DNA of 64,000 nucleotides from Anaeramoeba ignava BMAN (Eukaryota > Protista > Anaeramoebae): assembly GCA_028826165.1 (NCBI GenBank), contig JAPDFW010000023.1:10273-74272 (forward strand), written 5' to 3'. Made by a program: the position numbers and the translations under genes. Below the pieces are notes generated by a model. That model ran no database searches. It was not told the DNA's origin and saw nothing but the letters and a program-made list of their open reading frames with translations. Shown here piece by piece: positions 53 through 64,000 of the stretch. How positions within the stretch are numbered: the first letter of the stretch is position 1; each line of letters begins with the position of its first letter.

Positions 53-1520
53 GGAAATATTAAATATCTTGAAATTATTCTTAATTCAAATAAATATATT
101 GAAAATAATATTCAAAAAAAAAAATTCAGAAAAAAAACAATTTTTTAATTAATTAATTAAGGTTTATAATCAATTTAAATAATATTTCAAATCATTTATA
201 AAATAATTATTTATAAAATAACAATTCTTACATAATTATATTATGTAACAAAAACCCTAATAATATTATTATTATTAATAAAAAGAAATAATATCAAAGA
301 ATAAATTTAATTGTTAATAAACATATTAAATCAAGTTTTATTTAAAAAAAATTAATTTATATTCATATATTTTGACTTTTTGGAATGAAATAAACATTTC
401 TAATTTCATAATTCAAATAAATATAAGAAGATAGAAAATAATAGAAAAAAATTAAAATAAAATTAGAAAATCTTAATTCAAGAAATTATATTCAATCTTT
501 ATAAATAAGATAGAAATAAGGAATACAAAATATTTCAAAATAATTCAAAGAATATTTATTTTTTAGAAAGATAAAAAGAAATTAGAATGAATCAAGGATA
601 GAAAAAAAAATAATTTATTTAGAAATAATTAAATTATAAACCAAAAAAAAAATCAAAGAATAAAAAAATATCTAAAATATCAATAAAAAAAATATTATTC
701 TTCTAAAATTAATAATTTTCATAAATGGAATCAATAAATATACTTATTAAATGAAAAAAAAATAATAATATGAAATATATCTATGTTATTTAAAGAAAAG
801 AAAAGAAATATTAAATTATTTTCTTTATTTGTAAATATTAAATTTATCAAGAAATAAGAAATAAATGAATAAAAATCAATTCATTCAATTAAATAAATAA
901 ACAAAAACTAATAAAAGAAATTAACAGAAGGTAAATATATGAAAAAATAAACAATAGAATATATTCAGAAGATATTTGAAATTATATCATAATTTATAGT
1001 TAATGGGAAATAGAATATAATATAAGAAAGATGAATAGAAAATGAGAAATAATGAAGAAAATCAAATTCAAAATCAAATTCAATAATGATAATAAAATTA
1101 ATAAGATAAATAACAAGGATAATTCTGAAAATAAAAACAAATTCAAAAATAAAAACAAATTCAAAAATAAAAACAAATTCAAAAAAGAAAGAAAAATTCA
1201 AAGAAAATAAATTATAACAAAGAAAATAAATCTAAGAAAGGATATAAAGAATATTTGGAAATATAAATTAACAAAGATATCAGAATTAGAGTTAGAATCA
1301 AAATAATGAAAAGAATAATCAGAATATTATACAGATTATTTGATAGATTATTCTTAATTGAAAGATTAAATAGAATATGATTATAAAAATTAATTTAAAA
1401 ATGAATTATTCCATTTTCCTTTATTTTCTTTTTATCAAAATTACTTCAAAAAAAACATAAAAAAAACATGTAGAAATCTCACTTATGATTTTCTTAATAA
1501 AATTAAAAATCAAAATCTTA
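1..1520 (+). pseudogene. Decayed 3' part of a non-LTR retrotransposon of the same family as 4707-10078 (runs off the window start)
   Basis: Colinear by-eye similarity to ~7523-8570 plus 9638-10236. Examples: 55-115 (aatattaaatatcttgaaattattctt) vs 7580-7640 (aatgttaaatatcttgggattatactt); 913-980 vs 8379-8450; 1227-1340 (aaatctaagaaagg...tacagattat) vs 9916-10032; 1467-1518 (catgtagaaatctcactt...) vs 10187-10236. Many stops and indels. Confidence 0.9.
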
Positions 1521-1590
1521 TTTGATATTTCCCCAATTTCAAATTAAATTAAATTAAATTAAATTTAAAATTAAATTTAGATTATTTTTT

Positions 1591-3466
1591 TCAAATGAAC
1601 TAAATAAATATTATTTTATTTGGGAAATTTGTTTTTGTTTTTATTCAAAAGAAAAATCACAAAAAAAAATGTTTATTTTTACATACTATTTTTTTTCAAA
1701 ATAAAATAAAAACAAATTTTCATTCAATAAATAATTCATTTTTTTCAAAAAGGAAAAAAAGAAAAAAAAGTAAATTTTGATTTTGATTTATTTTTACTTC
1801 CTATTATAAATAATTTAATATTATTCAATTTAAAATAAAAATTGATTATTTTTGATATTTATTTATTATTTAAATAAAATAATTTTAAATTTAATTTTAA
1901 TTGTTTTTGTTTTTGTTTTTTGAATAATAAAAATGTAATTTAAATTGGAAAAAATTTTATATTATTTTACATCTTGTTTATTCCAATCAGCTCCTGATTT
2001 AATAAAATGATTAAAAAGATCCTTATTAATTGGTTTCTTTTGTGCAAAATAATGTAATAAAGTTGCTCCATTCTTTTTTATTTTTGTTTTTAAATTTAAT
2101 ATTGGAAAAACAAAATAATTCAAAAAAGAAATGAATTAAAATAAATTATTCATAATTTAAATAATAAAAATGAGTTAATAAATTAAAGAACTAATTGTTG
2201 TTAATTTTAATCAAAAAAATAATTCAAACCTCCTCTTTCTAAATTTATTTTTTAAATTAAATAAATTAAATTAAAATTAAATTAAAAATATTAAAAATGT
2301 TTTTGTTTTGTTTTTGTTTTTGTTTTGAATTACATAATCTGATTTGTTAAATTCATCTTCCAAAAGCTTTAATTCCTTTTCAATTTCAACAGTATTGATC
2401 TTTAAATTTGTAAAATTTTTTTGTTAAAATTAAATAATAAATCAAAATAGATTAATTTTTTTTTCCAAAACAATAATAAATATTAATTTAATATATTTTA
2501 ATATTAATTTCTTTTTTTTTTTAAATTTAATTATTTACTGGCTATTTATTAAATTGAATAATAAATAATTAATTAAAAAAGGATTGTGAAGAAAAAAATA
2601 GGCAAAAAAAAAGATATTTACTTCCTATTTATTTTATGAATAATTATTTTTGAGTTAATAAATTTTTAAATATTTTATGAATAAATTAAAATAATTAGGT
2701 TTAAAAAAAAGAAAAAATATTTAATTTTTAAATTCCACAAATGAACAAAATGGCAAGGAAAATATATTTACTTTCTATTTATTAAATAATAAATAATTAT
2801 AAATAAATAAAAAGAATTGAGCATAAAAAAAAGGAGAGAATATTTATTTTGAAATTTCTCAAATTAAAAAAATTGGGAAAATGAGAAAAAATGGGAAATG
2901 AAAAATATATTTACTTTCTATTTTATAAATAATTTTCATTTTTGTTTTGAGAATTGTTTTTTGTTTTTAAATATATTAATTTACAGGCTATTTTGTTTTT
3001 ATTAAATATTTTCAATTCAAATTATTTAAAATAAATTTATTAATTTAAAAAAATAATTACTGGCTATTTTTATTTGAATGAAAATTAATTAATTAGTTTT
3101 GGAAATAAATATATTAATAATTAATAAATTAGAGATTAATTAAATTCAAATTATATTTTTTATTTAAATTTGAAAAATATATATATTAATTTGAAATAAA
3201 ATTACTTCTTTTTCGTTCATTAATTCTTGTTCTTTGTTGATTAATTCTTGTTTTTCTTTCATTAATTTTTGTTCTTTGTTAATTAATTCTTGTTTTCCTT
3301 TCATTAATTCTTGTTCTTTGTTAATTAATTCTTGCTTTCCTTTCATTAATTCTTGTTCTTTGTTAATTAATTCTTGCTTTTCTTTCATTAATTCTTGTTC
3401 TTTGTTAATTAATTCTTGTTTTTCTTTCATTAATTCTTGTTCTTTTTTTGTAGTAAAATTTTCCAT
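1591..3466 (-). CDS. Predicted spliced gene (~156 aa): 14-aa coiled-coil repeats, micro-exon-encoded linker, one ankyrin repeat
   Basis: Phase-0 GT-AG exons: 3466-3206 (87 aa); 3-nt exons 3063-3061, 2987-2985, 2917-2915, 2774-2772, 2624-2622, 2541-2539; 2399-2334 (INTVEIEKELKLLEDEFNKSDY); 2238-2230 (KEE); 2072-1971 (NGATLLHYFAQKKPINKDLFNHFIKSGADWNKQD, ankyrin-like GxTxLH...GAD.N.xD); 1800-1798; 1685-1683; tentative last exon 1599-1591 (FI*). First and last exons are uncertain, and an AATAG precedes the ATG. Confidence 0.7.
3213..3445 (-). repeat. 42-bp coding tandem repeat (two 21-bp halves), ~5.5 copies, encoding KEQELMKEKQELIN
   Basis: Repeated aattcttgttctttgttaattaattcttgtttttctttcatt; heptad periodicity in ORF 3164..3466. 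Confidence 0.92.
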
Positions 3467-3559
3467 CTATTTTTATTTTTATTTTTATGTTTTTGTTTTG
3501 ATATTTTTAAATTAATGAATTTTTTGTATTGTTTGTTTTTGGAATAATTAAAATTAATA

Positions 3560-4420: not shown

Positions 4421-4706
4421 TAAAAAATAAATAAAAAATAAATATTTTTTATTTTGTGTTAACTTTTAAGATGAAAAATGAAAAATGAAAAATTTGTTTT
4501 TATTTTTTTAATTAAAAAAAAAGAAAAAAGAAAAAAGAAAAAAGAAAATTTCTTATTTATTAAGTTTTGAATAAATTTCAAAACAAATTGTTTATTTAAT
4601 TTCTTTTTCAAAAATGAAATAAAATTGATAAAATTGTTCTTAATCATAATTTTGAATTTTTTTAACTAAATTTATTTATTTTATTTTTTTCTTTTCTTTG
4701 AAAAAA

Positions 4707-7700
4707 ATGGTCAAATGGGGAAACCTGTATGTTTATGCAGACTCTCCATTAATTTCAAAACATGTCTTCTTTGACATATTAAAACCATATAAAATAGTGA
4801 GAGGATACTTGAGAAGGAATAAGGATAGTACCGATGGACACTTTAAAGTAATTCACGATAAGAAAGCAAGAAAAGAACAAAGAAGAACATGGAGAGAAGG
4901 TTATTCAATTACAGTATCTAAAGCAAGAGAGAGTTACACTTCAAAAGAAAATCAACTTGAGAAATTAAAAGAAAAAATAACGGATCGAAATCAACGGTCA
5001 CATAAAGAAAATATAGAAAAAATAATTTATCAAACATTGAATTCAAATAACTTTATTAAGAATCCATTAATAATTAAGAAGAAAGAAATTGAAAACATTC
5101 AATCTAATCAAGAGAAACATGAAAATATTTTAAATGAGATCAAAGAAACAATACAAAAAGCAATTCCTCAAATGAAATCAAAGAGAATAATTCAAAAAGA
5201 TTTACAAGAATTTATAAATAAAAGCGTTAATTATTCTTATTTAAAAACTTATAAACAACATAATCCATATAGTTATCAGAGAACTCACAATTTACAACAA
5301 GAAATTTCAGATTCTCTGATTCAACACAATTGGGAAATTGATACAAATTTAAGAAAAACAATTAATTATCGAAATTCAAAATATTATATGGAAACAAATT
5401 TTAACAAGATACTACAAATTTTAGATTCATATAAATTAATTATCAGAAAATCATTTCTTAATATATTTGAAATTCTTAACATCATTAACAATTTTCACCC
5501 ACTGAGAATCATTCAAAAAGGGAATCATCAAGCTGAGATATGGGATCGAAAAAATAACATATTAAATCTTTTTCGAGATTGTAAAAATGAAAGAAATAGA
5601 ATACCAAGAAATTTCAAAATTCAATTAAAAACAACAGAAGGAAACAAAATTGAAACAATAAAAGGAACTAAATTAACAAAAATAAATCAATTCTCATTCA
5701 GAATAGCATCTATAAATATCAATGGATTAAATAAAATAGGAAAGATCCAAAAATTAGAAAAAATATTCCTCCAACAAAGAATAACAATTGCTATTATACA
5801 AGAAACTCACTTGAGAAAAAGATTATATTTTGAAAACTATCATTCATTTGAGAAACAAGGATATGGAACAATAGCACAAGGAGGAATAGCAATAATCATC
5901 AAAAAATGTATATCAAAATATGCTCAAGAAATAAAACATCCAGATAAGGATATTATACAAATTAAAATAGGAGAATTAAATATTATTGGAGTCTATATGA
6001 GACATGGAACACAATCTCAAATGATGAGTCAATTAAACGATATTATTGAAAAATTAGGAGAGGAAAGATATATAATAGCAGGAGATTTTAACCAAACAGA
6101 CAAAGAAATGGAAAAACATTTCAGATTTAATACTCAAATAATACATAATACTGAGAATAGTGCAATAAGAAATATTGATCATTTCTGCGTCAAAAATCAA
6201 AATAGAGAAATTTTATCACAAACAGTAAATATTAATCAAGAAGAAAATCTCTCAGATCATAAAATGATAGTTACAATTGAGAAAATCAATATATTGAGTG
6301 AAGAGAGAAAAGAATATTACCAACCGACAAAACAACAATTCCAAGATATGATAATAGAAAAATTAATAAAACAAAATTTATCTGAGAAATCAATGCTCAA
6401 CATTTCAATAATTAAAAATGTAAAAGAAAAATTCAAAAAAAGAAGTATCATCCATATAAATACAAAAAATAAGATAGGAATTAACTTAACAGAATTTAAC
6501 TCAAAAAATAAATATAATTGGAAACAAGCTCTGAGGAAAAGGTGGAGAGAAACCATGAGAGGGATAGAAATAGATAACCAAAGCAAAACAAACTATTGGA
6601 CAGAAGTAAAAAGGATAACAAAAGCTAGAAAAGATATTATATTTAATAATAATGAAAAAGAAAAAGAATTTAAACAACTTATAGATAAAATTAAAATTCC
6701 AGTTCAAGAATCAATACTTCAAGAAATAGAAAATAAAATAATAAATATAGAACCTGATATAAGATCAATCAAACAAATATTTCCCCATGATAAATTAATA
6801 AAAACAATTCAAAACTCAAGAAATAGTTCTACTTGTGATTATGATAAAATCGAAATGTATCAAAATCCTTATATTGAAAGAGAACATCCAAAATATTATG
6901 AATTTATCAAATCAGTAAACAGAATGATGAGAGAATGGATAAGAGATCCCAACCAAGAAGTAATAAAATATATGCTTTCAAGAAGAATGGTGTTCATCTT
7001 TAAACAAGGGGATCCTAACCAAATCTCTAATTATCGCCCAATATCTATAAATAATGCTTTAGTAAGAATATTTTTGAAAAGAATACTTGAAGAAATTGAA
7101 CCAATATGGGAATACATCTCGTATCAACAAATGGGTTTTAGAAAAATGATGGATACAAGAATAGCAGTCTTAGAGTTACAAAAGAAATTGAAAGAAATAA
7201 AAGAACCATATATAATAAGTATAGACATTCAAAAATGTTTTGATACTATTGATCATGGATTAATTAGAAAAGTTATTAATAAATTCATCAGCAATAATAA
7301 TATTAAAAAACTATTAAATGAATATTATAAGGGAAATGGATGTGGCATCTATCAAGGAGATCCATTATCACCTTTAATATTTGGAATGGTCAGTCACTTT
7401 ATAATTGAGGAAATAAAAATAAGGGTTGATCATATACAAATGTATGCTGATGATATGATACTATTAGTAAAAAATTCTTATAATAAAGTCATAACTAAAG
7501 TTCAATCAATATTACAAATTCTTGAAAATTATGGATTAAGACCTAATAAAAATAAAACTATAATAACAAAACAAAAAAGAAATGTTAAATATCTTGGGAT
7601 TATACTTGATGCAAAGAAACATATAGAAAATAATATAGAAAAATGTGAAAAAACTTTTCAAAAATTGAGATTTATAATACAATCCAACCAAATTTCTAAT

Positions 7701-10078
7701 CACTTGAAAATTATAATTTATAAAATGACGATTCTTCCACAACTATATTATGGCACAGAGGCATTAATACTCAGAAAGAAACAATATCAAAAAATGGATT
7801 TAATGGTGAACAAACATATGAAATTAATTTTAAAAATAAACTTTCATTCACCTACGCTTACCTTTCGAAATGAAACGAATACCCCCAGTTCCAGAACACA
7901 AATAAATGTGCGTAGGTGGAAAATAAGAGAAAAATTAGATAAAATTGAAAAATCAGAACTTAAAGAATTATGTCCAATCTTCACAAATGAAAGAGAGAGA
8001 AATGATAAAATATGGGAGAATCAAAACTTGAAAATCATCCAAAAATATTTATGTTTAGCAAGGCACCAAGAAATGAGTATCAATTCAGGATGGAAAACAA
8101 TAGCCTATTCAGAAATTACTAAATTAGAACCTAAAAAACCAAAAATAAAAACATATTTAAAATATCAAAAAAGTACTATATTAATGAAATTAAGAATATT
8201 CACAAATGGACTTAAATCATATAGCCACCACATGAGAAATAGTGATGTGAAATGTCCATGTTGTGGAGAAGAAGAAGAAACATTGGATCATTTTTTTTGG
8301 AAATGTCCAATGTATCAAGAGATAAGAAATAAATGGTTGAAATCAATACATCCAATAAAACAAACAATTAAATTAATGAAAGAAATTAGCAGAAAGGGAA
8401 TATATGACAAAACTATAGAATATATTCAAAAAGCTTTTGAGATTAGATCAGAAATGATAATGGATGAGAATATAATTGAGATAGATGAAGAGAATATTGG
8501 AAATGAAGAAAGAAATCAAAATGAAAATCAACAACAAAGTGACATGAATAATGAAAATAATGAGAATAATAGAGGTTGGGATGGAATCCCTCTTGGTTCG
8601 CGGATATCTATATTTGGTCGCGGATGTTCTTTTGTATCCACGAACAAAAAATTATCCTCGAAATTTTTTTTTCCGTAGATGTTAATTGAGATTCGCGAAA
8701 AATGATTAATTCGCTAAAATGAGGAAGTTCGGAAAATGTCCCTATTTGATCTCGGTGAATTATTTTGAAAAAAATTATTTTTGATCATTTTTTTCTTATG
8801 GAAAATTCGTTTTAATTTTATCAAAATTCTCAATAAAATCGCTAACCAATTCTTCTTGAAGAATTTTCTGATAGTGAAGAAGAAATTAGAGATTTTGATT
8901 CAATAAAATTTGAAGAACTGCAAGCAACTAATAATGAACAGAGATTAGAAATTCTAACCAATTTTGGATTTCAAGATTTTCTCAGTTTATTTCAATTAGT
9001 CGAACTCGATTTTCAATATCAGGGAAGAGGAGCTAGAAGAATGAAGCAAACAAATGAAACAACTTTTCTCATGGCCTTGGTATGGAAGATTTTTTCAAGA
9101 ATATTCATTAATAGTTGATAAAGCATATTATGATCTTCAAAATGAAATTCAAATTGTGATCCCTTTCAAAAAACCGAGAGGATGTGAACTCAATCAAGAA
9201 GAACATTTTTTTAATGTTAGATTATCTTCTCTTTGGATCCAAATTGAGCATTATTACGGAAGATTAAAAGTTCTATGGTCATGCATGTCCAATAATTGGT
9301 GTGGAGAAAGAGAATATTTTTATCAAAAAGTTTTTGGAGTTTGTGTTTCCTTAACTAATTTTGAGATTCGATCTGGCCATCCTCTATCTTATAATGATTA
9401 AATTAAAAAGAAGAACAACAATCATTTTCATTTTTCAAACAATAATTTTTTTTCATAACAAATCTCTTTCTTTTTTTTTCTCATTTCAATTCCTTTTTCC
9501 TTTTGGAAATGAAAGAAAATAAAAAATTCTCAAAAAAAAATTTTTTTTTATTCCGAACAACTTAAAATAAGCGGAAATCAATTTTTTCGCGAATAGATTG
9601 ATTTCCGCGAACCAGAGGGGATTCCATCCCAACCTCTAATGATGAAAATAATAAGAATAATAATGAAATTAATAATGAAATTAATAATGAAAACAATAAT
9701 GAAAATGATAATGAGAATAAAAACAAACCCAAAAAGGTAAGGAACAAATCAAAAAAGAAGAAATCAAATCAAAAAGAAATGAAGATCAAAAAAAAGAAAA
9801 AGAAAGAAAGAAAAAAGAAAGAGAAAAAGAAAGAGAAAAAGAAAAAGAACAAAAAAAGAGAAACCAATGAAAAAGAGAAAAAAACAAAGATAATAAAGAG
9901 TAATAACAGAAGAAGAAATCTAAGAAAAAATCCAGAGAAAACTTGGAAATATCAATTATCGAAAATATCTGAATCAGATTCAGAATCAGAAACAAAGTCA
10001 TGGGAAAAAGAATCGGAATATGATACAGATTATGCTCCAGATTCTTCTTCCTTGGAAAGCTCAATAGAGAGCGACTAA
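4707..10078 (+). CDS. Non-LTR retrotransposon single ORF: APE endonuclease + reverse transcriptase + CCHC zinc finger + low-complexity tail, interrupted at 8571-9637
   Basis: APE motifs ASININGL, IQETH, GGIAII, AGDFN, IDH, SDH; RT motifs FIFKQG..YRPISI, QMGFR, DIQKCFD, QGDPLSP, YADD, KYLG; zinc finger CPCC..ETLDHFFWKC. First ATG is 4707 (the ORF track starts at TTG 4698). As written it stops at 8678 inside the inserted transposon; without the insert the frame is open to TAA at 10076-10078 (~1430 aa). Confidence 0.95.
8571..9637 (+). mobile_element. 1067-bp non-autonomous DNA transposon (PIF/Harbinger-ISL2EU/IS5-like) with 34-bp TIRs
   Basis: Left TIR 8571-8604 agaggttgggatggaatccctcttggttcgcgga; right TIR 9604-9637 reverse complement agaggttgggatggaatcccctctggttcgcgga (31/34 identical). 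Flanked by AAT/AAT (or TA/TA if the ends are 1 bp shorter). Subterminal TCGCG motifs at ~8598, 8618, 8693, 9587. Confidence 0.93.
8798..9401 (+). pseudogene. Internally deleted DDE_Tnp_4-like transposase
   Basis: C-terminal half in ORF 9054..9401 (IVDKAY...IPFKKP...EE..FN..LS...IEH.YG.LK..W, carrying the second D and the E). An N-terminal fragment lies in a different frame (..LEILTNFG.QDF..LF.LV..GRGARR..FLMAL, ~8846-9080). The first catalytic D region is missing. Confidence 0.82.
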
Positions 10079-59178: not shown

Positions 59179-59219
59179 AGATGTTTTTCCCCTTAAATAA
59201 TATTTTTTTATTTTTAAAA

Positions 59220-59651
59220 ATATAAGAACAAAAGGTTAAATCTCAATAGATCGTATTTATTTTTAAATAAATAAAATATAAAATAAATTATTTATTTAAA
59301 AATCTTACTCTACTACTTACAATCCCTTGTTCTATTTTAAAGTCGTTTACTGAATATTTTTATTCTTCATTTTTTTATATATAAATATTTTTCAATTTTA
59401 TTAATATAAAATTTATTTTAAATTATGTTTTTGAATAAATGAAGTTTTGATTTTTAAAATGAGTATTTTATTAATTTAGTTTGGTTTCTGGCTTAGAGGC
59501 TTTCAGCCATAATCCTTCAGATATAAGCTTCTAATCATTGCTTATTCATCCAAATCATTTTACCTTTAATCTGAAACAACAGTTCCTCTCGTACTATGTT
59601 GTATTACTATCAAAATACTTTTATTTTTTATTTTATTTATTTAAATAAATG

Positions 59652-59705
<54 letters not shown>

Positions 59706-60430
59706 TTAACGGGTGAACAATCCGACCCTTATTCCCTTATACAAGAATAGGATAGGAAGAGCCGACATCGAAGAATCAAAAAGCAACGTCGCTTTGAACG
59801 CTCGGCTGCCACAAGCCAGTTATCCCTCAGGTAACTTTTCTGACACCTCTAATTTCATTATCTACTTTAAATGTATAGATTTCATTGAATATTTTTAAAG
59901 GATCGCTAGGCCATGCTTTCACACTTTTTATTCTTACTGAAAATTTAATTTAAAGAAGCTTTTACCCTTATGTTCTAAACATGATTTCTGTTCTTCTTGA
60001 GCTTCTCTTAGGACGTCTGCGTTATTTTATAGCAGTCGTGCCGCCCCAGCCAAACTCCCCACCTGATCTTGTTTTTGTTGTTTTTATATTTCAATAAAAT
60101 AATTTAAAAAAATATAAAATTTTGGATTGGGTTTTTATTATTTTTATTTAAAATTAATATTATAAATAAATTAGAATAAAATAATTTATTTATTTACCCA
60201 CTTAAACAAATTAGTAATATGATACCAAGAGTAGCGGTATTTCACTTTTGTTTTTCATTTAAATAAATAAATAAAAAACTCCCGCCTATCCTATACCTCT
60301 TAGACCATTTTACTTCATCAGACTAGAGTCAAGCTCTAAAGGGTCTTCTTTCCCCGCCATTCGTACGAAGCCCGTTCCCTTCGCTGTTGGTTCGCTAGAA
60401 GGTAGATAGGGACAGTAGGAATCTCGTTGC

Positions 60431-60516
<86 letters not shown>

Positions 60517-62861
60517 CTTTGAATTTCTTCACTTTAACTTTCAGAGCACTGGGCAGAATTCACATTATGTCTAATTCTATTTCAAAACTTTCATAATGCT
60601 ATGTTTTAATTAAACAGTCGGATTCCTCTTGTTAGCTTCAGTTCTGTTTTATTTTTTAATTAATTTAAAAAAAATCAGAGCCAATCCTTCTCCCGAAGTT
60701 ACGGATCTATTTTGCCGACTTCCCTTACCTACTTTATTCTACTTAGCCAGAGGCTTTTAACCTTGGAGACCTGTTGCGGTTATTGGTACGTTCTTTTCCG
60801 AATTTTAAATATTACTAATTTTTTAAATATTATTAAATAATTTATGATAAATTCTATTATTTAAGAATTATTCTTCCAAACTTTTTTCCATTTCTCCAGT
60901 TAATCTGTTTCAATGGTAAAAATTATATAATTAATTTATAAAAATTAAATATATTTATTAATATAAATAAAAGTTTGTTAAAAAGAAAAGAAATCTCTTC
61001 TCATATTATTTAATAATGTTTTTAGTAATATTTTATGTTACCATTTTAAACCGATATTTAAATAAAATTTAAAATTTAAAAAAAAAAGGTTCAGGAATAT
61101 TAACCTGATTCTCTTTTGAGTTTTTATATTTATATAAAAAAAAATAAATATTCTGTAAATAATCGCAATTAAGCTAAACTCTTAGAAACGACTAACCCAG
61201 ATTCAATCACAGTTCATCTGGAACCCTTCTCCACTTCGGCCTTCAAGATTTTAACTTGAATATTTGCTACTACATCCAAGATCTGCACTATTGTTAATTT
61301 CATTTGATTTTAAAATCTTATAACTTCTATATTAACAATACGCCCTCCTACTCAATTAACTGAAAAAAAGTTAATTGGATATGAATAGGATAAATTTATT
61401 TTATTTTAAAAAAAGTTAAAGCGCCATCCATTTTCAGGGATAATCAATTCGATGGGTGAATTGTTACAAACTCCTTACCGGATTTCTATCACCAGGAACA
61501 CCGCCCCACTGTCTTCATCGATTATCTCCTTTTATGGTATCCATTGTACTTATATTTTGGCTCCTTATCATATCTCTCGGTTCATCCCGTTTTGCCATTA
61601 CAGATTACCCGTAATGGCCCACTCAATGCTATTAAATTTTTTTATATTTAATAAAAATAAAATTAATTTATTTTTATATTAATTTGCCAATTTGGAGTTT
61701 GAGAATAGGTTAAAATCAATAAGATTCCAAATCCTCTAATCATTAGCTCTACTTGACATAACTTTTTAATAATAATTTATTTAAGCATTGGCTATCCTGA
61801 GAGAAATTTCGGAGGGAACCAGCTACTAAATGGTTCGATTAGTCTTTCGCCCCTATAGCCACATTTGACGAACGATTTGCACGTCAGTACCGCTACGAAC
61901 TTCCTCCGAATTTTCATCCGGTTTCATTCTATGCAGCCATAGTTCACCATCTATCGGGTCCTAATATTTCTGTTCTTTCTAATTTTCTTAATAAAAAGAA
62001 AATTGATTTAAAATGATATTTTCACTTTCATTATGCATTATAAATTTAATAAATTATAATACTTACAAAAATATTAGACTCCTTGGTCCGTGTTTCAAGA
62101 CGGGTCCTTATTTTTCTTTATTTTATTTAATTTTAAATAATTTAAAAATAAAATTAAATTAATAATTATATTAAATAATAATCAATAATATTTTTATCAT
62201 TTTAATTTCAAAAGAAAAAAAAATAAAAAAATAAAACCAATTTATTTACCATTATTTAATTTTTATTTCATTTTTTAATTATTTTTTAATTTAAAAAAAA
62301 AAAAGAAGGATTCATAAAATAACAATTTCAAGTCCTATTTCACTCTCTTTTCAAAGTTCTTTTCATCTTTCCATCACTGTACTTGTTCACTATCGGTTTC
62401 TCGTTAATATTTAGTTTTAACTGATGATTACCAGTTTCTAAAAAAAAAATAAATTTAATTTTTTAGTTTTTATTAAGAGTGCAATCTCAAACACCCTGAC
62501 TCTTTATAAGTAATATTTAAAAAATTTATTATTAATTTAGAAAATTATTTTATAAATAAAACCTATTCAAATACGGGATTTTCACCCTCTTTGATTTTAT
62601 AAATAAAAATATTATTCCAAATATTTTATAATAGGTTAATAATAATTAATTTAAATATTTACTTTTTTAGTTTACAATACTAATTTATTTATATTAATTT
62701 TATTAAATAAAAAATAATTTTAAAATAAATAAAATTAGTTTTAAAATTTGAACTTTTATGTTTTCACTCGCCGTTACTAACATAATCATTGTTATTTTCT
62801 TTTTCCTCTGCTTATTAATATGCTTAAATTTAGCAGGTAATTTTATCTAAAATGAGGTTAA
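59220..62861 (-). rRNA. LSU (28S-like) rRNA, ~3.64 kb, with AT-rich expansion segments
   Basis: Reverse-complement conserved cores: acctgctaaatttaagcatat (5' end), gacccgtcttgaaacacggaccaaggag, ttaaggtagccaaatgcctcgtc, gatgtcggctcttcctatc, sarcin-ricin loop agtacgagaggaac, cgatctattgagatt (3' end). Ends are approximate. Confidence 0.98.
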
Positions 62862-62941
62862 TAAAAATAAAATTTAAATTTAAATTAATTTAAAAAATCT
62901 ATTTTAATTAAAAAATAAATTTTCAATTTATATAATATAAA
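62862..62941 (-). other. ITS2 (~80 nt, almost pure A/T)
   Basis: Between the 5.8S 3' end and the LSU 5' end. Confidence 0.8.
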
Positions 62942-63115
62942 ATAACACTCATTTAGAAATACTTTTTATTAAAATATTAATAAAAATATAAAAATAAAAA
63001 GTGCAATATGCGTTCAAAAATTCAATTATTCACAAACATTGCAATTCATATTATTTATCACATTTTGCTGTGTTCTTCATCATTACGAGAACCAAGATAT
63101 CCATTGTTATTTTTT
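62942..63115 (-). rRNA. 5.8S rRNA
   Basis: Reverse complement aacaatggatatcttggttctcg..gatgaagaacacagc..gaattgcaa..tttgaacgcatattgcac..tgagtgtt. Confidence 0.95.
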
Positions 63116-63191
63116 TTATTTATTTTTTATTTTATTTAAAAAAAGAATTCTTTTTATTTATTTAAAGTTTAAATTAAATTATTTTTTATGT
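63116..63191 (-). other. ITS1 (~76 nt)
   Basis: Between the 18S end (GGATCATTA) and the 5.8S start. Confidence 0.8.
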
Positions 63192-63326
63192 TAATGATCC
63201 AGCACCAAATTCATTTAGCGCTGCCTTGTTACGACTTCTCCTTCCTCTAGATAACATGATTTAATTATCTTTCCATTTTTTAAAAATAATTTTTAAGAAA
63301 TAGTCTAAAAATTTCATCGGGTTATC

Positions 63327-63372
<46 letters not shown>

Positions 63373-63897
63373 ATCAATGTAAAATTATGATTTACATTTA
63401 CTAGGAATTCCTTGTTCAAGATTAATAATTTCAATAATCTATTCCAAGCATGTTAATATTTTCTAAGTTTACCTAAATAAAAAATAAAAAATAAAAATAA
63501 ATCTTTTCTTTTAAAATTCTTTTCAGATTAGGTTATATTCATTTTAAAAATAAATTTAAGATGAATAATTACTTATTGTTATTAACATTGTAGCACGTGT
63601 GCAGCCCAGAACATCTAAGGGCATCACGGACCTGTTGTTGCCTTTATCTTCCTTTCATTAAAAAATGAATAGTCCTTCTAAGAAATTAAATTATTTTTAT
63701 TAATTTAAAAAAATATTTAATTAGTTAGTAAGTAAAGGTCTCGCTCGTTTACGGAATTAACACAGACAAATCACTCCACGAACTAAAAACGGCCATGCAC
63801 CACCATCCATAAAATCATGAAAGAGCTTTTAATCTGTCAATCCTTATTATGTCCTGATCTGGTAAGTTTCCCCGCGTTGAGTCAAATTAAGCCACAA

Positions 63898-63943
<46 letters not shown>

Positions 63944-64000
63944 ACTTATGTCCATACTCCCCCTCAAGTTTCCATATACTTATGCGATTTCTCGCTGTTT
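63192..64000 (-). rRNA. SSU (18S) rRNA, 3' portion (runs off the window)
   Basis: Reverse complement aaacttaaaggaattgacggaagggcaccaccagg, gtgatgcccttagatgttctgg, tgtacacaccgcccgtcgc, gaagtcgtaacaagg..ggatcatta. Confidence 0.99.

Follow-up and report, generated by a model that had tools for sequence, protein, structure and literature searches.

Tandem one-codon exons: a likely reading of eight splice-flanked triplets and of a genome-wide class of 3-nt junctions in Anaeramoeba ignava

Anaeramoeba ignava is an anaerobic metamonad in which one short gene raises the question of whether single codons can serve as exons in tandem. The gene lies on the minus strand of a 64,000-nt stretch of the strain BMAN genome (GenBank assembly GCA_028826165.1, contig JAPDFW010000023.1, positions 10,273 to 74,272), which is hereafter called the window and provides the coordinates used below. 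The original prediction, made from this sequence, was that eight triplets, each preceded by AATAG and followed by GTAA, are one-codon exons set between larger exons. All eight were found where it had placed them, each bounded by these canonical splice sites, and they are the sole matches to AATAG-NNN-GTAA in the 64-kb window, in which dinucleotide-preserving shuffles gave a mean of 0.45 and a maximum of 2. Based on the evidence assembled below, the eight triplets are likely to be genuine exons of a genome-wide class, whose short introns would be removed singly and in succession.

The spacing of the splice sites in this gene is distinctive. When TAG-N(k)-GTAA was scanned in the window for k = 0-15, the minus strand gave 8 hits at k = 3, and the 6 hits of the runner-up spacer, k = 6, were all located in the 22-62 kb repeat tract, outside the gene. 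The larger exons described by the original prediction are present (261, 66, 9 and 102 nt, all in phase 0), together with introns of 67-170 nt that are about 95% A+T and read GTAAAT...AATAG (Table 1). The 66-nt exon is homologous to the segment preceding the ankyrin exons in two kinase-SH3-ankyrin genes (L050 and L052). Beyond the window, the following ankyrin exon (WSPVHYLC..) is found 5.3 kb on, at C25:6587-6682, and is preceded by one additional 3-nt exon at C25:6884.

The same spacing stands out in the genome as a whole. Strict counts of AATAG-N(k)-GTAA over the 42.8-Mb A. ignava genome revealed 1421 matches with a 3-nt spacer, compared with 267, 174 and 228 for spacers of 2, 4 and 6 nt, respectively; the 0-nt form, counted with GTAAAT, had 25 matches, fewer than its reversed-pattern control. 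Because all of these counts fall far under that for k = 3, the excess is specific to 3 nt and does not extend to multiples of three, and the genome-wide enrichment proposed as a check on the original prediction is thus present. The figure of 1421 is an underestimate, since acceptors other than ATAG are also used: CTAG, TTAG and AAAG likewise flank 3-nt exons in ankyrin genes. The k = 3 matches are clustered, with arrays of 63, 43, 38, 36, 32 and 25 consecutive units at periods of 60-110 nt and with introns of about 71 nt. Such arrays follow a RING-kinase gene or lie within BTB genes and TLDc domains. Two junction families can be distinguished. Family A, whose similarity between genes is inflated by low-complexity A+T sequence, is common to BTB genes (L011, L018) and to arrays beside the RING-kinase gene (L015, L016) on three contigs, and its junction (..TTTAATAAATAG NNN GTAAATAATTAAAT..) fits the flanks of micro-exon 6 in the window; the other family occurs in TLDc genes. 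An assembly artefact was ruled out by the recurrence of the structure across many loci and paralogs. No account of tandem one-codon exons, or of a genome-wide class peaking at 3 nt, was found in the literature searched. The largest array, L015, spans C137:610.5-615.2 kb and would add 189 nt to its transcript. It is followed by a further peculiarity: the intron directly after the last of its 63 units carries a G+C-rich near-palindrome (GGGCCTGTCCCAGGCCC; L015 ~7240-7275, C137, ~615.2 kb), behind which come simple repeats, with no downstream exon identified.

Are these triplets codons, or by-products of intron multiplication? In arrays that follow a phase-0 exon, they were read as codons. In the TLDc arrays, a single base of an incomplete codon is left at the end of the upstream exon, two bases are contributed by the exon on the far side, and the pieces are therefore read in phase 1. 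In the phase set by the flanks, none of 248 array triplets is a stop, whereas stops make up 14.6% of the intron trinucleotides of the same arrays; the TLDc arrays have an open frame in phase 1, whereas phase 2 is closed (19 stops in 71 for the wrong phase). Array triplets have a GC content of 26.3%, close to that of long-ORF (open reading frame) codons (26.1%) and far from that of the introns (5.0%). The log-likelihood ratio of codon usage over intron composition reaches +480 bits for the array triplets, with simulated means of +444 for coding and -589 for intronic triplets. Genome-wide, TAA or TGA occupies 13 of the 1421 triplets (0.9%) versus 79 of 767 in the reversed-pattern control, the depletion of stops that had been suggested as a second check. 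Since TAT accounts for about 8% of the first 100 matches listed, this deficit concerns stops and not A+T-rich triplets in general. Splice-consensus constraint was rejected as the source of the composition: the common triplets (GAT, TCT, AAA, AAT, GAA, AGA) are not NAG-like, and AAG was found once in 177.

These figures bear most directly on the view that the triplets are non-coding, with the block 2400-3205 and each array forming one long intron of tandem intron copies, spliced out as a whole between its outermost GT and AG, and the internal AG-NNN-GT sites being mere scars of duplication. Several facts agree with this view: introns of up to 4168 nt are reported in A. ignava (PMC11550330), published models, among them that of the window gene, skip the triplets, and TLDc paralogs align well with the arrays skipped and the frame kept. 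Scars should, however, decay towards 5% GC and about 15% stops, in contrast to the 26% GC, the codon usage and the absence of stops in the arrays, and to the rarity of TAA and TGA in the genome-wide set. Intron interiors differ between paralogs where the splice flanks do not, and codon-like pieces persist in an older array with diverged introns (L013). Consensus splice sites are complete in every unit, and unit length is close to the intron mode of 76 nt; it would be odd, in mechanistic terms, for 63 such units to be passed over in succession. Skipping also yields a 32-aa ankyrin period that is otherwise unseen (see below). Taken together, we regard the non-coding view as improbable.

Additional evidence came from the copies of the window gene. 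At least seven copies, about 90% identical, were found, most of them 2-12 kb from contig starts in a subtelomere-like position; the duplicated block corresponds to window 1400-3500 and to loci L002-L010. All eight micro-exon sites are kept in all seven copies, with the 8 x 7 splice-site pairs intact. None of the 64 ATAG/GTAA flank columns varies among the seven paralogs (P ~0.003 against intron interiors), compared with an intron-interior variation of 8.6% for substitutions and 13.1% with gaps. Triplets vary at 16.7%, a level similar to that of the large exons (~15%). Between copies, exons vary more than introns, chiefly through the coiled-coil exon 1, and no stops have been gained. The 9-nt exon follows the same pattern: its flanks are constant in 10 family copies and in the distant paralog L052, and its content varies without a stop (KEE, KKE, KNK, KKK, KKM). 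The TAT micro-exon is kept in all seven family copies and in the distant paralogs L051 and L052, whose introns have diverged.

The geometry of the encoded proteins provides an independent view. For the window gene, the ankyrin reading rests on paralogs: the 102-nt exon is 72-75% identical to the first ankyrin exon of multi-repeat paralogs, whose models carry ankyrin-protein names. In kinase-SH3-coiled-coil-ankyrin relatives, 32-aa ankyrin exons are split by one-codon exons, as in ..WNKQD/K/Y/N/WSPVH.., and micro-exon 7 of the window gene corresponds to the first hairpin-loop residue past the ankyrin exon, a position held by AAT and AAA in the paralogs L051 and L052, respectively. Without the micro-exons, the His-to-His spacing of these repeats is 32 aa. 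Intron-less ankyrin repeats in the A. ignava genome have a spacing of 33-40 aa, with 32 aa in none of 64. Among 150 relatives, a repeated 32-aa spacing (at least two per protein) was restricted to proteins named from A. ignava, such as KAJ5069518.1 and KAJ5075244.1, and both of the two such models that were compared with their genes omit micro-exons. The A. flamelloides homolog P0091 has a spacing of 35 aa, that is 32 + 3, and three micro-exons likewise give 35. The gene of P0086 combines both forms of the repeat: its contiguous repeats have the loop KNNIIKD, and its split repeats carry K/N/R/(ER)/P and I/N/N/K/K/G/K/I/(K)/R/K as 3-nt exons at the loop site, amounting to 4-11 one-codon exons with a K/N/I flavour that matches the contiguous loop.

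A comparable situation was observed in TLDc genes. In annotated TLDc paralogs, the loop at the array site is hypervariable, 1-10 residues long and rich in Y, S, G, D, N and W, and the TLDc arrays read in phase 1 spell strings of Y/D/N/S/P/F/W. A long TLDc loop is encoded contiguously in the annotated protein P0055. Two adjacent TLDc genes on the minus strand illustrate both states, one (L012 7324-7998) being intron-less at the variable loop and the other (L012 3080-3760) having a 7-unit phase-1 array there.

Why, then, would such exons have escaped annotation? The A. ignava genome paper describes a genome of 80.65% A+T with 32,108 introns (91.9% A+T, modal length 76 nt, GT-AG in 99.8%) and gene models based on stranded TruSeq RNA-seq of 100-nt pairs mapped with HISAT2, and micro-exons are absent from its main text and supplements (PMC11550330). 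In our own judgement, HISAT2 and other standard short-read aligners are unlikely to place 3-nt exons. All three published models compared with the DNA (P0085, P0135, P0086) skip the micro-exons. P0085, the 145-aa model of the window gene, uses the junctions 3206->2399 and 2334->2072, lacks the six linker triplets as well as the 9-nt exon, and runs past the 102-nt exon for two intronic codons before it stops. The direct joining of 3206 to 2399, named beforehand as the outcome that would speak against one-codon exons, is thus seen, in this HISAT2-based prediction only. Another model, P0088 (KAJ5072428.1), apparently reads retained introns as coding (..NLEG-GVKQ..) beside 32-aa ankyrin repeats, a further sign of unreliable models for such genes.

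Several observations weigh against one-codon exons. The two junctions of P0085 do so, though the model is a prediction and not a transcript, and the frame remains intact whether triplets are kept or skipped, so that the gene itself gives no decision. The intron-less TLDc paralog aligns well to the array-bearing one with the whole array skipped. In array L018, two 2-nt spacers (AA and CA, minus strand, 4837 and 5379; C57, ~594.6-595.2 kb) interrupt an otherwise regular array and would put it out of frame; long-read homopolymer errors, in a repeat where polishing is difficult, may be the cause, or else decay of the array. Hypervariable triplets amid near-identical introns, a point taken up below, are unexplained by simple duplication. 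As regards the window copy, P0085 has no Pfam match at E <= 0.01, the third hairpin micro-exon of L051 and L052 is missing, the copies are near-identical and subtelomere-like, and 5.3 kb separate it from the next ankyrin exon. These last features would equally fit a window copy that is a decaying or silent subtelomere-like fragment with relic micro-exons in a class that is otherwise real, and the window copy may indeed not be expressed. Decay is, however, at odds with the integrity of all frames and of every splice-site pair in the seven copies, and with exons that evolve faster than introns without acquiring stops. We consider such a relic unlikely.

How the arrays arose is a separate matter. 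Within arrays, diversity per site is 0.03-0.10 in introns and 0.24-0.77 at the three exon positions, and neighbouring triplets coincide at the frequency expected by chance in each of six arrays tested. Block duplication was detected at a lag of 7 units in L016 and of 3 units in L018, and not in the largest array, L015. In L015, mutation of a GT or AG has eliminated units, the two adjoining introns being merged into one of 145-148 nt. The original prediction had proposed the tandem duplication of an intron-plus-codon unit. Its proposal is borne out elsewhere in the genome by these lags and by near-identical array introns, and finds weak backing in the window, where the nine introns preceding a micro-exon or the 66-nt exon have a mean column identity of 45% and only I4-I6 are alike. 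The idea that the 140-147-nt introns of the window are double units rests on two clear cases in L015, and no decayed junction was detected mid-way in these window introns at up to 2 mismatches. Single-unit tandem duplication found no support as the sole origin, given that neighbours are no more alike than expected by chance. The arrays would probably arise by duplication of codon-plus-intron units or blocks through unequal recombination between near-identical introns, and a unit would disappear once mutation of a splice site had joined the introns on either side of it. Two histories can be envisaged: selection may have diversified the codons amid introns that are kept homogeneous, or an older coding sequence may have received identical introns at intervals of 3 nt.

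Insertion can also be imagined in the form of introner-type mobile elements that generate a 3-bp target-site duplication. Arrays with family A junctions are found on three contigs and in two or more unrelated types of gene, and the window contains a fragment of a Harbinger-type DDE transposase, a superfamily with 3-bp duplications. Such a model is contradicted by adjacent triplets that are identical at chance level only, which led us to reject target-site duplication, and by copies that are tandem at a fixed 3-nt offset and not dispersed, in arrays without an associated transposase. We consider it highly improbable.

Support for one-codon exons comes from the agreement between codon-like composition, missing stops, invariant splice flanks, ankyrin spacing and the k = 3 peak. 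From sequence evidence of this kind, the reading appears quite likely for the genome-wide class and fairly likely for the window copy. We infer that the triplets are included in mRNA and propose the following order of events. Intron definition would single out each intron of 67-170 nt individually, and introns would be removed one by one. The regenerated 5' exon end would serve the next step, in a manner reminiscent of recursive splicing, except that 3 nt stay behind, so that the mRNA gains precisely one codon per unit. The recursive stepping also envisaged by the original prediction does not hold in its strict zero-length form, the spacer here being 3 nt and the 0-nt form being rare. In the product, the coiled coil would be connected to the helical segment by a linker, P-P-K-K-E-P, encoded by six of the triplets, and the remaining two (E, Y) would supply loop residues past the ankyrin exon.

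In line with the original prediction, micro-exons might also be optional cassettes, each of them skippable, with up to 2^8 isoforms from the window gene; arrays might then act as somatic generators of loop and linker diversity. Every unit is frame-neutral, micro-exons occupy variable sites (ankyrin hairpin loops, the hypervariable TLDc loop, linkers), and triplets are far more diverse than array introns, all of which would suit such a role. Near-identical strong splice sites, however, offer no obvious handle for regulated choice, and the conserved TAT (Tyr) micro-exon looks constitutive. Optional use therefore seems doubtful to us. A broader and tentative idea, which we hold to be possible at most, is that of a "one codon per exon" system in which near-identical introns and hypervariable codons would rebuild, one codon at a time, the surface loops and linkers of expanded protein families, with 3-nt-specific spread and maybe many isoforms; propagation specific to 3 nt is proposed because the 0-nt and 6-nt forms are not enriched.

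Table 1. Predicted exons of the minus-strand gene and neighbouring features of the window
Feature	Position	Strand	Preceding intron	Remarks
Exon 1	3206..3466	minus		261 nt; ATG at 3466; coiled-coil heptad-like repeats; 3' end GAA/GTAA; N-terminus of published model P0085; strongly divergent among 7 paralogs
Micro-exon 1, CCA (Pro)	3061..3063	minus	3064-3205, 142 nt	ATAG/GTAA flanks invariant in 7 paralogs
Micro-exon 2, CCT (Pro)	2985..2987	minus	2988-3060, 73 nt	
Micro-exon 3, AAA (Lys)	2915..2917	minus	2918-2984, 67 nt	
Micro-exon 4, AAA (Lys)	2772..2774	minus	2775-2914, 140 nt	GAA in the other six paralogs
Micro-exon 5, GAA (Glu)	2622..2624	minus	2625-2771, 147 nt	
Micro-exon 6, CCA (Pro)	2539..2541	minus	2542-2621, 80 nt	CTA in one paralog
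66-nt exon	2334..2399	minus	2400-2538, 139 nt	Helical segment ..EKELKLLEDEFNKSDY; in P0085
9-nt exon, AAAGAGGAG (K-E-E)	2230..2238	minus	95 nt	Flanks TTTAG / GTTTGA; left out of the published model
102-nt exon	1971..2072	minus	157 nt	One ankyrin-like repeat (..GATLLHYF..SGADWNKQD)
Micro-exon 7, GAA (Glu)	1798..1800	minus	1801-1970, 170 nt	AAA or GGA in paralogs
Micro-exon 8, TAT (Tyr)	1683..1685	minus	1686-1797, 112 nt	
Non-LTR retrotransposon ORF	4698-8678	plus		1326 aa, intact; endonuclease/exonuclease/phosphatase domain, reverse transcriptase, zf-RVT
Harbinger/PIF-type DDE transposase fragment	9054-9401	plus		DDE_Tnp_4, E = 5e-10
Low-GC tract	20000-58000			~38 kb of 6-9% GC between genes and rDNA (ribosomal DNA)
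rDNA unit	59216-64000	minus		At contig end; LSU (large subunit) 59216-62860, 5.8S 62943-63115, SSU (small subunit) 63192-64000, cut by contig end

The remainder of the window is of a different nature. As the long retrotransposon ORF is intact, the standard genetic code is in use. The low-GC tract contains C-free 2-kb stretches, reaches a GC skew of 1.0 at 30-32 kb and 40-42 kb, and has internal repeats at offsets of ~1.55 and ~2.85 kb. The expansion segments of the rDNA are very A+T-rich.

If transcripts confirm the one-codon exons, A. ignava would have the most extreme exon architecture known to us, with more than 1000 exons of 3 nt and more than 60 of them consecutive in places, and ideas on the joint use of splice sites 3 nt apart might have to be revised. 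The published proteome would be wrong at micro-exon sites, ankyrin models being left with an unnatural 32-aa repeat. The arrays would offer a tractable case of gain and loss of single residues through the birth and death of intron-plus-codon units, and would pose the sharp question of how hypervariable codons came to lie between introns that are nearly identical. For annotation pipelines, the case is a warning, as standard aligners would in our judgement probably fail to place exons of this size.

Among known systems, the micro-exon genes (MEGs) of Schistosoma, which encode secreted flatworm proteins from symmetric exons of 6-36 nt, come to mind first. Both have runs of very short symmetric exons, any subset of which stays in frame, as well as variable proteins and family expansion. 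The A. ignava exons differ in being exactly 3 nt long, with no enrichment at 6 nt and up to 63 in a row, in having near-identical array introns and in residing in genes of intracellular type (kinase, BTB, ankyrin, TLDc), and no homology to MEG families was seen in protein searches. Recursive splice sites, or ratchet points, which leave 0 nt and subdivide very long introns in Drosophila and vertebrates, similarly place a 3' splice site directly before a 5' splice site and imply stepwise intron removal. In contrast, the A. ignava sites leave 3 nt, the 0-nt form being rare, and delimit segments of 60-170 nt. Isolated ultra-short exons, including neural micro-exons of 3-27 nt and a 1-nt exon in Arabidopsis, indicate that exons as short as 1-3 nt are within reach of the spliceosome; a 3-base exon is described in human MAP4K5 (PMC8632122). 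Those exons are single among ordinary ones, whereas the A. ignava exons form tandem arrays throughout the genome.

With respect to origin, introners and introner-like elements, described as many near-identical introns within one genome (PMC3609843, PMC3879977), share with the A. ignava arrays a near-identity of introns from which a recent increase in intron copies can be deduced. Introners are scattered as single copies at separate sites, whereas the A. ignava copies are tandem, with a strict 3-nt offset, hypervariable codons and no signature of target-site duplication. In Rogers' model, the tandem duplication of an exon segment containing AGGT reportedly yields a new intron. A duplication spanning splice sites can similarly make an intron plus a small exon, and block duplications are visible in L016 and L018. 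Under this model, however, neighbouring micro-exons should be identical and 3 nt should not be favoured over 0 or 6 nt, and neither expectation holds in A. ignava.

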